64,000 nt of DNA. Origin: Bugula neritina (Eukaryota; Animalia; Bryozoa). Position 1 is the first letter of the stretch; each line of letters opens with the position of its first letter. Below the pieces are notes generated by a model, which made no database searches, was not told where the DNA came from, and saw nothing but the letters and a program-made list of their open reading frames with translations. Of this stretch, positions 1,705-10,381 are shown one piece after another. Where the stretch lies: the NCBI GenBank assembly GCA_964035545.1, contig OZ037770.1, positions 13,010,642 through 13,074,641 of the forward strand, written 5' to 3'. The translations under genes and the position numbers were made by a program.

Positions 1705-4700
1705 TATAACGTAACAATATACCAAGAAGTAATTATATAGCCATCAACTGCATCAGTAATTATACAATTACTTTCTTTGATATATTATGGTTAAGCTAGT
1801 ATTAAAGTATTACGTAGATCTGCACTGTTTTGTTGACTTGTGGAACTTAGCAAACTATGGTTTGATGCATTTTCCTTAAACGTTATCACTGCAGCTTTCA
1901 CAAGGTCACCAAGGTTTAATTTTGTAACATAAAATTTGGCATGCAAAAGGGAATACAAAAACTTCACTGTCAGATTGACTATTTATGATAGTTATAATGA
2001 TAGTCATCTCAATTCTACATCTACTTTTGAAATAAAGGTTTAAGCTCCTAGGCTAATGATTTATCCAGTTACATGTAACTCTGGAAATCTAAAGTTTTGG
2101 CAAAACTAGCTGTCAAAATGACTACAATTCAGTATGAAATTATAATAATATATAACATAGTCTACGTATAAGACCATCTCCAGCTGCATGATTTTTACTC
2201 ATTGTGTCTTCTATTGAATAAAAATATTATGTGCATCCATTTTTTCTCATTTGGATTTGAAATTCTTATACTGTGGTTTAGCAAGAGTAACATATGACCT
2301 AACACTAATTACTATATCAAGCTTATACTGTTTTGTTCAGGTTTTTTCTTCTGAAATATGCTGTTTTGGTTGTGTTCTATGTGCATTTAAGATAATATTG
2401 CTTTCGATATTAAATTCATTGATCGCCATTTGGAGTTGAGGTTAAATTTGCATATTTAAAAAAACTATAAACCAAGGTTAGATATATCTTCTAACATCTC
2501 TAAACCTTGATATATATCAAAGCATCACTCTGGAAGATAGAATAACCATTGCTAAATACCAGAGTAATGAATTCATATACCATCATGTCAATTCTGAAAT
2601 GAAGTGATGACTCAGGGTCATCCAAAACCAGGCATCTGCTCAAATTACTGTTTGACAGCAAATGACATTTCAACTCTGTTTGAAATTGGGCTAAAGGAGA
2701 TGATTCAGTTAGCTGGTCAAATTTTTAGTTTCTAATCACCTATTACTGCTGAGTATGGCTATTTCATGCTATAACTGTCAATTACTATTACTGGTACTAT
2801 TGAGTACATACTATAATACTACGTCTATAACTTGTATCATTGAGTATTACTATTGTTACAATTGAATACGATCATTACTAATACTGAGTAGTGCTACTTA
2901 TACTATTGGGATAAATATTCACAATTAATCAGAAAACTACTGAGTGATGGCCACAGCTGCAATATGCTCAGTTAATAACTTTTACTGCTGCTGTTTTCAA
3001 CAAGGAGGATATTTTTCTTGGTTAAATCATAGATTAATTTCGAAACTGACTTGTCTCTTTGAAAAGTATAAGCTTCACTCACCTGGTATGTAGAAATATG
3101 TAGAAATAGGTCTATTGAATGTGAAATTCTAATAACACTTCATACATCTCCACAGCAACTCCATTTGTTTCACTATGGTATACTAAGTACTGATCAGGGA
3201 AAATTAATGACCAATCAAGTATCAGAAACGGTTGCCATTGGCCAATCAACTATAAAAGTGCATGTTTATAGAAAATAAATACCAGTTTAGTAGGATAGAA
3301 TGGCTATATAGTAGTTTGTATAGTAACCTGATATATAATTTCTCAAAATGAGATTTTAGTTTGATAAACATTTCCCTATTCTATAGATAGACACACTATG
3401 TTACTGGGTGTGTCTGCAAATTTGAAAATTGATCCTTTGACAAGATTTTCAGATATACGCCTTTTGTCTAGCAATTTTGTAAAGTGAATCAAGTGAAAAG
3501 CGTGCAGTTTACGAGGTTTTGTTTATTATTCTAAAAATTGTTAAAATAAAATAGGTCAACTTTGTCATTGATGGGTAAAAAAAATTGAACTCAATAAATT
3601 TTTAAACCCCATTTTAAACTCACATATAATAGATTATTTACCAATTGAAATTTGCTGCAAGACCGATATTTCTGTCCCTTGTGTTGAGGGTGACATGCAT
3701 GGTAGATATCAGTGAACATGCAGTCTGCAGCCCAACTCTGCTAGACTACCTACTTTCTCAGCACAGATTACTTACCAATCCAAAAGTCTCACTCTCTGAC
3801 ACTGCGTTCAATAATTCTGATTAATTATAGTTTATTTGACACACTTGGAGCTTCTGCTTCTGTATCTTTTATTCTCATCACCATGACAACTGTAATGCCG
3901 TGGTACTAACAAACTATCAAGAACTTCCTATTATTGCTAAAACACTTACAACATAAAACACTATTCAAATTAACATAATATGTTTATTATAGTACTTATA
4001 GTTTCAGCTTTGCCAGTGCAACAGCTAGCTTTTTATATTACATCAACAATTATTTTGTACTACTTTTAAACTTGTAGATAGTTATAACTACAGATTTCTC
4101 TACACCGCGATCTGTCTTCATAACTGCTATGCGTTATAATTATTGCCTAAGATCAAATTCTGTTTAATATTGTTGGATTTAGTAGAAACTGCACGGAATA
4201 TAAGATGGTTTATAGTATTTATCATACTATCTACAAGCTAACCTAAGGTGATTGGCTAACTGCCCTACAAGCATTAGGATTTCCTAACAGCTTAAGTAGG
4301 GCTTGGATATTGGCTATCGGAGTGGTAAAAGTAAAGACTGCACTCTTACACTGAGTAGAACTTTACGTTGCAGAAACAGCATCTCAAACTGCAACCTGAT
4401 GTATGGAGAATCCTCCAGCCAAAGTTCTATAGCTCTCCTCTTGTAGTTTGGGGGCCTTTTGTCACTGACTATCAGCTTTGCGTCATTGAATAATGCAGAT
4501 TTAATAATAAAATCCCTTTGCTGCTGCTGAACTGTATTCTTACAAATCAATGCGCCCTAGAGAATATGACTTGCAGAATACGAATGGTTAAATTAACAAC
4601 AAATTATGATAATTTCTTGGCTCTTGACAATTCAGCAATCCCCCACTTATTTCATCCTCCAATCATAGCAAACAACTTAGGCGTATATGTTAATTCTGTG

Positions 4701-6943
4701 TGGGTGACTAAAAAAATAAAGTTGCATATTTTTATCTCTTATAATTTTTGGCTGCCAGATGCTAAAAGTTTAAGCTAGCAATTTTAGTATTATATATTTG
4801 ATATTCCATGAATTGGGCTGTTAATTTTCAATTTTACAGTTTGTAACTTATAGTACATGTATATATAATTGCTATTAGTAATTAAGGAATTTTTTTAAGA
4901 TTATAGTCATTACCTTTTTAGTGCTTATTCTATTTCCTTGTTAAATGTTGAACTTACTAATACCTCTGCATGTAATATAAGTTATCTTCTCTTGTATATA
5001 AAAATAATATGGTATAATACAGTGCACTTTCTATATAGTTGATTCTGTTTCCCACATTTAAAAATTAAAACCTTGTGAGTTTCTCAAAAAAATAACTCAA
5101 TTGTAAGTCTGTGAGGACATTTATGAAATTATTTATATTTTTTTAAGGCCTGTGAGTTGTCCACATAGAAGACTGAAAAATATAAACTTCTGATTTTTGA
5201 CATAAATAATAAAGTTATTTGCTTTCTAGCGCTGCTGTCTGCATAAAGTGCATCAACTTTCGCATTGGTGATGAATTTGTGATGTCAACTGATAACAGAA
5301 ATGTTAAAGCTTCAACAATGATTCATCAACTTATTATAGCTTAGCTTTAGGAATACATTATTCAATTTCTCTAAACTCTATGAACCTCAAAGACATGCAC
5401 CTAAAAGCCTACTGCTGATCCAGCAGAAAAAATATTCTCGGATATAGCCAGCACCGGTAAAATGAATATACTGCATCAGTAATATAAACTTGATTATATG
5501 TGTAAACATAATATATATTTTGTCTCCAAACACCCTTGCAGCGCCATTAACCTCATTTGTTATACTTCCTGGTAGACTATGTTTACAGATAAGAGTTTTT
5601 TTTCTTTAGAGGTCATTGACTCTGCCTGTGAATGTGAGTACTAGTTAGAGATCAAATTACTGTGCTGCTAATATATACCAGTATCTGATTGTTATATTAT
5701 ATATATTGATGATTAGGAGAATATCACTTGTATGTTATTTTAACATAATATATTATGGAAATACTAGGTTAATTATAGGAATTTCTGCAAGTACTTTAAG
5801 CAGTAATAAAATATACATTACTTGGTGCAGTACACTCTATTTATACCTGAGAATTCAATAATATTTAATCAGTTATGTGTTATTTTCGGTATTTACAAGC
5901 ACTATGTTGCTAAATGAGTGCTTTTATCCCAATACATGCACTTTGCAAATGAATGATTACATTGTAATCATAAACATATTAAACTACAAGTTTCCGTTTC
6001 CATAATTATGCTAAATCTTATTATAGCTAGGTTAGTATGAATGTTAATAGTTATATACTGCTCACAGTAGCAATTGTTTGTACCGATTCTGATCGTATTT
6101 ATTACACTTCCTGTTGGTTTATTTTTGCACGTTGATAAGCTCATGCATGTGTAAATTATATGCATTTATACAACACCATAAATCAACAACAGCTAGTGTC
6201 TAAAAGTGAACAACATGTAACCCTAAATTTACCATTGAGAAATTATTTCATCAACTTTTGATCTTAAGTAAACAAACAATTCCATCGTAAACTAGTTGAA
6301 GAGTGGCTTGAACATGAAAAGACAAATCCTCTATCCGTCATTTAATTTCCTATGTCTTGATTGTTTTAGACATGAAATTATTATTTTTGTTGGTGTTTTA
6401 CAATATCACAAAACTAATTAAAAATTTGACACATTTTATTAGACATTAAAGGAAATTATGAGCAGTAGTTTTGCCTAATGATAAATAGTGAAGAAAGAGA
6501 AGATAACTCTAGAGCTACAACCTTTTGACAATTATCAATAGTTTCAATAGGTTTTCTTCTATTTATGCATTGCATTTTAAAACCAGAAGAATTTGTGACA
6601 TGATTAGTTTCACTTGCATCACCAAAAACAAATTAGAATATTATATTTGTACTTATATGACCACACAGCTGCAAAAGTCAACTGCTTTTATAAATTAAAG
6701 CAGTCAGTCCCAATGATACGCTTAAAACTCTAATTTTATGTTCTACTCAATAACACAATTTTAAACATAATGATTTTATATAAAATTGATCAGATTTTCA
6801 CAGTTAAATATATTAATAAATAGTATTATTGTTAAAGTACAGTATTCACTATTATAGTATAAAGAAAACACAATCTAGATTCACATTGACAAGTTGTTTG
6901 ACAAACATCTAAGATGGGGAAAACTTTCAACTGTCAACTCTAG

Positions 6944-9691: not shown

Positions 9692-9771
<80 letters not shown>
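9692..9771. repeat. (TA)n microsatellite
   Basis: ~80 bp of pure TA. Confidence 0.97.
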
Positions 9772-9775
<4 letters not shown>

Positions 9776-9942
9776 AACTTGTACTATATCTCAAGTTTGT
9801 TCAAAACAGTGACCCAGATGTCAGCAAAGTTGATTACTGCCAACGTGTAAATAATAATGAAATGTATTGACTTTCAGATATGTTATGTAACGTTATAATA
9901 AGGGATGCTATATATAGCTATAGATTAAAGTACAAGATGATC

Positions 9943-10025
9943 CACATATAGCAATATGTTTACAGTAACGTATATGCATAAAGAAACATGTTTATACATA
10001 TATATATATATAAATATATAAATAA

Positions 10026-10057
<32 letters not shown>

Positions 10058-10130
10058 TTATATATATATTTATATGTATAAACATGTTTCTTTATGCATA
10101 TACGTTACTGTAAACATATTGCTATATGTG
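9943..10130. repeat. Long inverted repeat with TA-rich centre
   Basis: ~58-bp arm CACATATAGCAATATGTTTACAGTAACG...TTTATACATA is repeated as its exact reverse complement ending at 10130. Confidence 0.95.
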
Positions 10131-10251
10131 ACCCCTAGGTGACCCCTAGAGTCACTTGAGCTCTCTGGCTTGAGTTTACACACCTTTTAAATATGCTTTA
10201 GTAGAAACATAAGTTTCTACTATTGCGAAGGTGTGGGCCATGGTACTCTGT

Positions 10252-10298
10252 TCTGTGCTGATGAGGGGATTAACCCCGAAACAACTGCTGTCCACAGA
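10252..10298 (+). ncRNA. Type I hammerhead ribozyme
   Basis: TCTGTG-CTGATGA-GGGG(ATTAA)CCCC-GAA-ACA(ACTGC)TGT-C-CACAGA: intact CUGAnGA/GAAA core, stems I, II and III all pair, GUC cleavage triplet ending at 10292. Confidence 0.88.
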
Positions 10299-10301
10299 TT
10301 G

Positions 10302-10304
<3 letters not shown>

Positions 10305-10381
<77 letters not shown>

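Follow-up and report, generated by a model that had tools for sequence, protein, structure and literature searches.

The sequence at 10128-10306 of the window (the whole 64-kb stretch of DNA analysed here) is very likely a 5'-truncated, single-hammerhead retrocopy of a young 272-nt non-LTR retrozyme, belonging to its subfamily A and inserted in (TA)n. The hammerhead motif that it carries is real. What is new is the 5' junction of the copy, which holds a perfect 58-bp inverted duplication of the unique DNA upstream. The family to which the copy belongs is probably a young non-LTR retrozyme, a known kind of element, and probably one mobilised by Penelope-like elements (PLEs). The features of the copy, its hammerhead and its surroundings are collected in Table 1.

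Table 1. Retrozyme copy, hammerhead and flanking features, in window coordinates
Feature	Position	Strand	Description or basis
(TA)40 microsatellite	9692..9771	.	left of unique block; regex scan, sequence
Palindrome left arm	9943..10000	.	end of 9773-9999 stretch
TA-rich palindrome centre	10001..10072	.	symmetry centre 10036.5; all 6 arm mismatches inside
Inverted duplication of 9943-10000, perfect 58-bp	10073..10130	.	100% over 58 nt; abuts retrozyme 5' end
Likely 5'-truncated retrozyme copy, subfamily A	10128..10306	+	unit positions 108-272 plus 14-nt tail CACAGATTGAGGTA
Type I hammerhead motif	10252-10298	+	helix I open, helix II 4 bp, helix III 3 bp (4 bp in family consensus)
Helix I, 6 bp	TCTGTG 10252-57 / CACAGA 10293-98	+	sequence
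Hammerhead core CTGATGA	10258-64	+	sequence
Helix II GGGG/CCCC	10265-68 / 10274-77, loop ATTAA 10269-73	+	sequence
Hammerhead GAA	10278-80	+	sequence
Helix III ACA/TGT	10281-83 / 10289-91, loop ACTGC 10284-88	+	sequence
GTC (GUC) at cut site	10290-92	+	sequence
Predicted self-cleavage site GUC↓C	10292..10293	+	from H17 position in motif
(TA)33 target microsatellite	10305..10370	.	takes element 3' end; degenerate TA-rich DNA to about 10500

BLAST of 10128-10310 against the genome returned at least 65 matches at 97-98% identity, spread over all large contigs. The 216-Mb genome has 469 exact matches to the core pattern CTGATGAG-N8-22-CGAAAC, compared with 14 to its reversed control, and 441 of the 469 carried a GGGG-type helix II (the other 28 did not). 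Units also stand in tandem, as in the array at locus L004 (5.1 x 272 bp, 99%), which has (TA)n on both sides. The family therefore shows both the tandem repeats and the dispersed copies by which non-LTR retrozymes are recognised, the window copy amounting to 0.66 of a unit. Two subfamilies can be told apart: A (GGGGACAAACCCC, 272 nt, tail GAGGTA), which includes the window copy, and B (GGGGACAAATCCC, 271 nt, tail GAGATA). About 14 positions separate the two consensus sequences, and inside helices the changes are solely G-C to G-U. Unit GC is 45.6%/43.2%. The unit is non-coding, the longest ATG ORF in it having 21-22 aa, and its sequence contains no terminal repeats and no LTR, PBS or PPT. Its RNA folds at -109.9 kcal/mol (z -7.4 relative to shuffles).

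The sequence-only reading had taken the single motif as the sign of a probably uncatalogued mobile family of Penelope-like or non-LTR-retrozyme kind. Such a family is borne out by the 272-nt unit, the 469 versus 14 core matches, the tandem arrays and the dispersed copies, and further by the fixed 3' and variable 5' ends in (TA)n and the RT/GIY-YIG PLEs with similar short-helix-III hammerheads described below. That it was uncatalogued also holds for Rfam, which gave no significant match, and for the papers searched, which yielded no report of bryozoan hammerhead retrozymes. The search for papers pairing hammerhead ribozymes with bryozoans found none except one on twister ribozymes.

Four runs were compared with one unit, two of raw RNA reads and two of contigs, the contigs showing neither ends nor strand. 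The two raw-read RNA runs, which carry another organism label, placed 0 reads on the unit. Contigs described as 'metagenomic RNA-Seq' covered the whole unit at summed depths of about 5,000-45,000 and those of an oligo-dT metatranscriptome covered it at about 10, the record of these contig runs as RNA being partly a guess. In both contig runs, some contigs pass from the unit end into the unit start. This coverage fits abundant multimeric or circular RNA; tandem DNA would fit too. Self-cleavage and a circular RNA of the retrozyme are predicted from its sequence. Separately, at position 2353 of L004:2200-2470 in the high-depth run (X1), about 84% of depth had the subfamily B letter (UCCC), and a rough count by eye put about 60-65% of the first 100 listed genomic core matches in B. 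Subfamily B may be more expressed, or the sample may differ from the assembly.

The ends of the copies indicate how they arose. Among 57 insertions delimited in the fetched loci, 50 share one 3' end, ...GUC↓CACAGATTGA(G[G/A])TA (arrow, cut site), running into (TA)n. The distance from the cut site to this end is 14 nt, which places the end at the TA-like patch GGTATTAT of the unit. The 5' ends are distributed along the entire unit; 17 of them fall at unit positions 1-16 and mark whole-unit copies, and eight of the 57 insertions hold at least two units. The copies thus have the fixed 3' end and the 5' truncation of retroposed copies, and target-primed reverse transcription is recognised by just such constant 3' and variably truncated 5' ends. 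Given the 14-nt offset of the fixed end from the cut, the template would have been a multimer still uncut or a circle closed again by ligation, rather than a linear monomer freed by cleavage. The position of this end at a TA-like patch likewise suggests that TA microhomology was used in priming.

These ends also bear on whether the 272-nt unit might instead be a satellite DNA with a hammerhead, comparable to newt satellite 2, that spreads as DNA, for example by unequal exchange, rolling-circle replication or reinsertion of extrachromosomal DNA circles, and not by reverse transcription. We consider this improbable. Tandem arrays do exist, some of them segmentally duplicated (e.g., C8:2722281 and 2722871, C3:19440339 and 19440800), and contigs run round the unit as tandem DNA would give, but most copies are single, at most about one unit long and dispersed on all large contigs. 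The one fixed end opposite a variable one in 50 of 57 insertions also speaks for reverse transcription, and the target is always (TA)n, as it is for the PLEs of this genome.

These PLEs were found by reading the ORFs that adjoin other hammerheads. At locus L068, a 714-aa ORF (3443-5584, minus strand) runs without stops and contains YRDD, a Cys motif and GIY...YIG. Pfam found no match at E<=0.01 in this ORF, though its RT and GIY-YIG motifs are visible, and the Pfam GIY-YIG profile gave one match in the genome. The ORF itself is matched at 63 or more places in the genome, which fall into three classes by identity (88-100%, about 50% and about 45%). Since the 714-aa frame is open in at least four genomic copies, the PLE family may still be active. 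In these elements the hammerhead lies about 100 nt past the stop codon, and another 100 nt or so leads to the end of the element in (TA)n; a family 2 copy has the same layout with a different hammerhead (CUGAGGA). PLE copies occur head to head, and at L068 a 5'-truncated copy (5593-6552, plus strand) lies head to head with the full-length ORF.

The shared (TA)n target, the shared ribozyme type and the shared end logic suggest that the retrozyme is probably mobilised by the RT/GIY-YIG PLEs of the genome. Insertion bias towards (TA)n is known from Naiad PLEs (PMC8557442), and for Neptune PLEs the hypothesis is that the Cys-rich linker mediates a bias towards microsatellites (PMC8557442). Retrozymes have been described as non-autonomous PLE derivatives (PMC7229834; bioRxiv 10.64898/2026.07.22.740005).

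A closer tie, in which the unit would be the terminal repeat (pLTR) of a PLE and its copies solo or 5'-truncated PLE ends, is unlikely. None of the 57 insertions continues 5' into an ORF, and the arrays only repeat the 272-nt unit. In a BLAST comparison, the retrozyme and the 3' UTRs of PLE families 1 and 2 shared nothing beyond the hammerhead core, and tblastn of the PLE ORF against the 64-kb window gave no match. These results have to be set against several points in favour of a pLTR: PLE hammerheads are located near the 3' terminus, 5' truncation is common among PLE copies, retrozymes and pLTRs are sisters in Xenopus (bioRxiv 10.64898/2026.07.22.740005), and besides the two families whose 3' UTRs were compared there is a third, with a protein sharing about 45% identity with that of the first.

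Other ORFs adjoining hammerheads proved unrelated (Integrase_H2C2, Tctex-1, MULE). Two loci on two chromosomes, L069 4600-7749 and L070 4650-7763, are identical in build: an inverted pair of family-D hammerheads stands 646 nt apart, and about 1.4 kb after the pair comes a 347-aa ORF with a MULE transposase domain. This build could be a composite or a segmentally duplicated element. At L019 2167-2215 (minus strand), about 650 nt from a retrozyme copy, there is a distinct type I hammerhead, ACAC / CUGACGA / GUGCAG-UUCA-CUGUAC / ACU-AUUC-AGU / C / GUGU.

The window copy is 97.6% identical to the unit over 165 nt, with four mismatches (10133, 10270, 10271 and 10284). Three of the four substitutions fall in the hammerhead: two are in loop II, and the one at 10284 turns the fourth helix III pair from G-C to A-C, so that helix III is down to the 3 bp given in the sequence-only reading. 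The window contains no second retrozyme copy. Having only one hammerhead and no upstream unit, the window copy cannot release unit-length RNA, and it is probably inert. Its position had been described as between (TA)n tracts. This is right for the 3' side, with its (TA)33 tract; on the 5' side the hammerhead is preceded by roughly 125 nt of retrozyme body and the 58-nt inverted duplication, and only then by TA-rich DNA.

At this 5' junction, 10073-10130 is the reverse complement of 9943-10000, and the two arms with their centre form a 188-nt palindrome. The trinucleotide GTG at 10128-10130 is common to the inverted duplication and the retrozyme, as microhomology. A genome search with 9773-9999 matched only its own 57-nt inverted copy in the window. 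We had considered this stretch as the 3' end of another (TA)n-inserted element ('Element X') and dropped the idea, there being no other genomic match. Directly after (TA)40, at 9773-9800, lies a small hairpin, ACAAACTTG-tactatatct-CAAGTTTGT.

The arrangement suggests that the 58-bp inverted duplication is a fold-back scar. In the order of events that it would imply, the broken (TA)n end on the upstream side folded onto itself and was extended by copying 58 nt from its own flank; the extended end would then have switched to the cDNA at the GTG microhomology, leaving the 188-nt palindrome. A second such case was found at L051, with perfect 111-nt arms, a centre in (TA)n, about 70 nt of inverted flank and an AAC microhomology. 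These two were the clear cases in an inverted-flank search of 28 junctions, an exact-match search restricted to junctions whose last 20 nt were below the TA threshold, in which decayed cases would be missed. The L051 retrozyme (1024-1770; G000:C1, about 14584266-14585012) stands between two PLE-like hammerhead fragments of roughly 170 nt. The fragments carry the 3' half of the hammerhead, UGUACA-UUCAA-UGCACA-UGAAAC-UAGUAGUA, and each starts with its own small hairpin duplication, AATCTTCAGAT...ATCTGAAGATT.

Its truncation and its place beside an insertion scar make it very improbable that the window hammerhead has been co-opted by the host, for instance in transcript processing, as the conserved intronic hammerheads of amniotes appear to have been. 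The core is intact and the motif lies within 0.6 kcal/mol of the minimum free energy, as host use would have it, but the copy is one among hundreds of near-identical young copies. Taken alone, the window copy is one probably dead copy of a known kind and changes little; the family is more useful.

The motif itself was re-read from the sequence, and all the coordinates that the sequence-only reading gave for its parts, with the cut after 10292, were correct. Read as RNA, 10240-10310 gives UCUGUG-CUGAUGA-GGGG-AUUAA-CCCC-GAA-ACA-ACUGC-UGU-C-CACAGA. The invariant core is present (C3 U4 G5 A6 N7 G8 A9 ... G12 A13 A14), the A15.1-U16.1 pair is A10281/T10291, and H17 (not G) is C10292. The topology is that of type I, with three helices round the core, of which II and III are loop-capped and I is open. 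The description of the hammerhead as intact is accurate for this core, but not for the whole motif, which has three substitutions inside and belongs to a 5'-truncated copy with a single hammerhead. The proposed extension of stem I past an internal loop survives in part: the isolated 69-mer folds in this way, but the full unit pairs CUC/GAG only. The sister subfamily has GAGATA where the extension would have GAGGTA. The 69-mer fold has a z-score of -0.46. In energy, the hammerhead fold is 0.6-2.9 kcal/mol less favourable than the local minimum free energy structure.

A descriptor combining stem I of at least 5 bp, stem II of at least 4 and stem III of at least 3 with the core CUGANGA...GAA, A15.1/U16.1 and H17 matched once in the 64-kb window (both strands) and never in 300 dinucleotide-preserving shuffles. 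The loose core pattern alone had 9 matches in the window versus 3.6 expected, which is not significant, so the site stands out because of its helices. The sequence-only reading had proposed Infernal with Rfam Hammerhead_1 as a check and counted a blank result against the motif, and with Rfam the result is blank. The whole window at the gathering score gave no significant hammerhead match, nor did the tandem array L004, and 301 nt searched at E<=10 gave no hammerhead match. A 69-nt query at E<=10 returned only RAGATH-1-hammerhead (11.1 bits, E 9), a local match with the core aligned. Rows such as CLRN1-AS1 and mir-297 were set aside as low-complexity or chance matches. RF00163 run on the genome is an unfair test of the retrozyme, since 73 of 16,234 candidates were scored and the best match, at 25.4 bits and below the 34-bit threshold, was a PLE hammerhead.

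For a non-circular test we built a covariance model (R1) from an alignment (A1) of seven hammerheads of the same genome, located next to PLE ORFs or in other non-retrozyme contexts and including no retrozyme sequence. With filters off, R1 matched 10252-10298 (plus strand) over its full length at 24.6 bits (E 3.8e-4), the sole significant match in 64 kb, the runner-up in the window reaching 12.5 bits. The family consensus hammerhead scored 18.3 bits under R1 (E about 0.02). With default filters, R1 missed the window motif. As the same model finds the motif without filters, the Rfam blank may be due, at least partly, to the speed filter and not to the structure. The practical warning is that filtered covariance-model scans can miss type I hammerheads with a short helix III. 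R1 with filters off also gave extra hammerhead-like matches that our regular expressions had missed, at L067 5512-5563 (plus strand, 50.5 bits), L071 5389-5441 (plus strand, 38.4) and L068 3193-3228 (minus strand, 29.6).

Covariation was measured in a second alignment (A2) of 25 matches, representing 15 distinct hammerheads of the genome fitted to the model structure; these are distant families, not orthologues. In A2, 96.8% of the cells form standard pairs versus 69% after shuffling, and both sides have changed in 10 of 14 pairs. Covariation was 0.627 versus 0.19 in shuffled alignments (0 of 500 shuffles reach the observed value), and slid partners gave at most 0.148. A chance match to the hammerhead consensus, for which one could cite the Rfam blank and the 69-mer z-score of only -0.46, is already refuted by the shuffle and core-pattern counts and runs against both the E value of the independent covariance model and the covariation across families that backs the fold, leaving it a negligible probability.

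For a non-LTR retrozyme with a real hammerhead, the following course of events can be proposed. The type I hammerhead would cut tandem or multimeric transcripts at GUC↓C, probably while transcription is under way or in the form of a double hammerhead joined by the self-complementary helix III. Cofolding of two consensus motifs gives a predicted double hammerhead in which helix III is extended, its energy being -37.9 kcal/mol versus 2 x -14.8 kcal/mol for the single motifs. The unit-length RNAs would then be ligated into highly base-paired circles. An RT, most likely from the RT/GIY-YIG PLEs, would prime at nicked (TA)n on the UAUUAU patch of the unit, 14 nt past the cut, and would copy part of a unit, one unit or several.

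On this basis we tentatively suggest, as a possibility rather than a likelihood, that the insertion scars record two biochemically undemonstrated steps of Penelope-type retrotransposition: priming on an internal UA patch, and second-strand synthesis from a snapped-back (TA)n end. Should priming take place at a UA-rich patch inside an RNA that is circular or an uncleaved multimer, 14 nt beyond the cut, then a linear monomer released by cleavage could not serve as template. If true, the snap-back second strand would explain the inverted 5'-truncated copies that are a hallmark of Penelope-like elements. There is no in vitro system for reverse transcription and joining by PLEs (PMC8557442). Its youth, its hundreds of near-identical copies and the clean junctions of these in palindromic (TA)n make the family good natural material. 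Together with its presumed PLE helper, the retrozyme would be useful for working out both reactions.

Several known systems resemble parts of this picture. Elsewhere, DNA breaks are known to carry fold-back inverted duplications (e.g., PMC11724301). Like these fold-back (snap-back) duplications and L1 twin priming, the junction described here has an inverted copy beside a break, a self-complementary centre and a join at microhomology; unlike them, it is coupled to the 5' junction of a retrozyme and centred in its (TA)n target. In the two cases found, the fold-back arms reach 58 and about 70 nt beyond the TA tract, and the mechanism proposed for them is read from the junctions. The hammerheads of newt satellite 2 and Schistosoma Sm-alpha (Rfam RF00163) are also of type I, lie within repeats of a few hundred bp and have a short helix III, which by modelling is compatible with double-hammerhead cleavage here as well; in contrast to them, the window motif is not reported by RF00163.

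The hammerheads of PLE pseudo-LTRs (Cervera & de la Pena 2014; Craig et al. 2021, PMC8557442) share with the window motif the type I fold and a very short helix III, and they too lie near the 3' end of the element, with a (TA)n bias and inverted head-to-head junctions. As in known PLEs, those of this genome carry an RT, a Cys-rich linker and, at the C terminus, GIY-YIG. Unlike PLEs, the 272-nt unit has no ORF in it or beside it, and its helices I, II and III all differ in sequence from those of the PLE hammerheads of the genome.

The nearest parallel is with the non-LTR retrozymes of metazoans, which have units of 170-400 nt, tandem and dispersed, with a type I hammerhead and linear and circular RNA (Cervera & de la Pena 2020, PMC7229834). 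What sets the present family apart is its strict (TA)n target together with the constant position of its 3' end, 14 nt past the cut, a description of these not having been found in that paper, and the window copy, unlike a tandem unit of such retrozymes, is a truncated fragment. Expression of metazoan non-LTR retrozymes yields both linear RNA and circular RNA, whereas the present family is known from DNA sequence and contigs. In the remaining respects the two agree: the 272-nt unit is small and non-coding, lies within the 170-400 nt range and has one type I hammerhead; its copies range from tandem dimers to multimers and are also dispersed; and it combines a GC content below 50% and the lack of LTR, PBS, PPT and ORF with a highly base-paired unit RNA.
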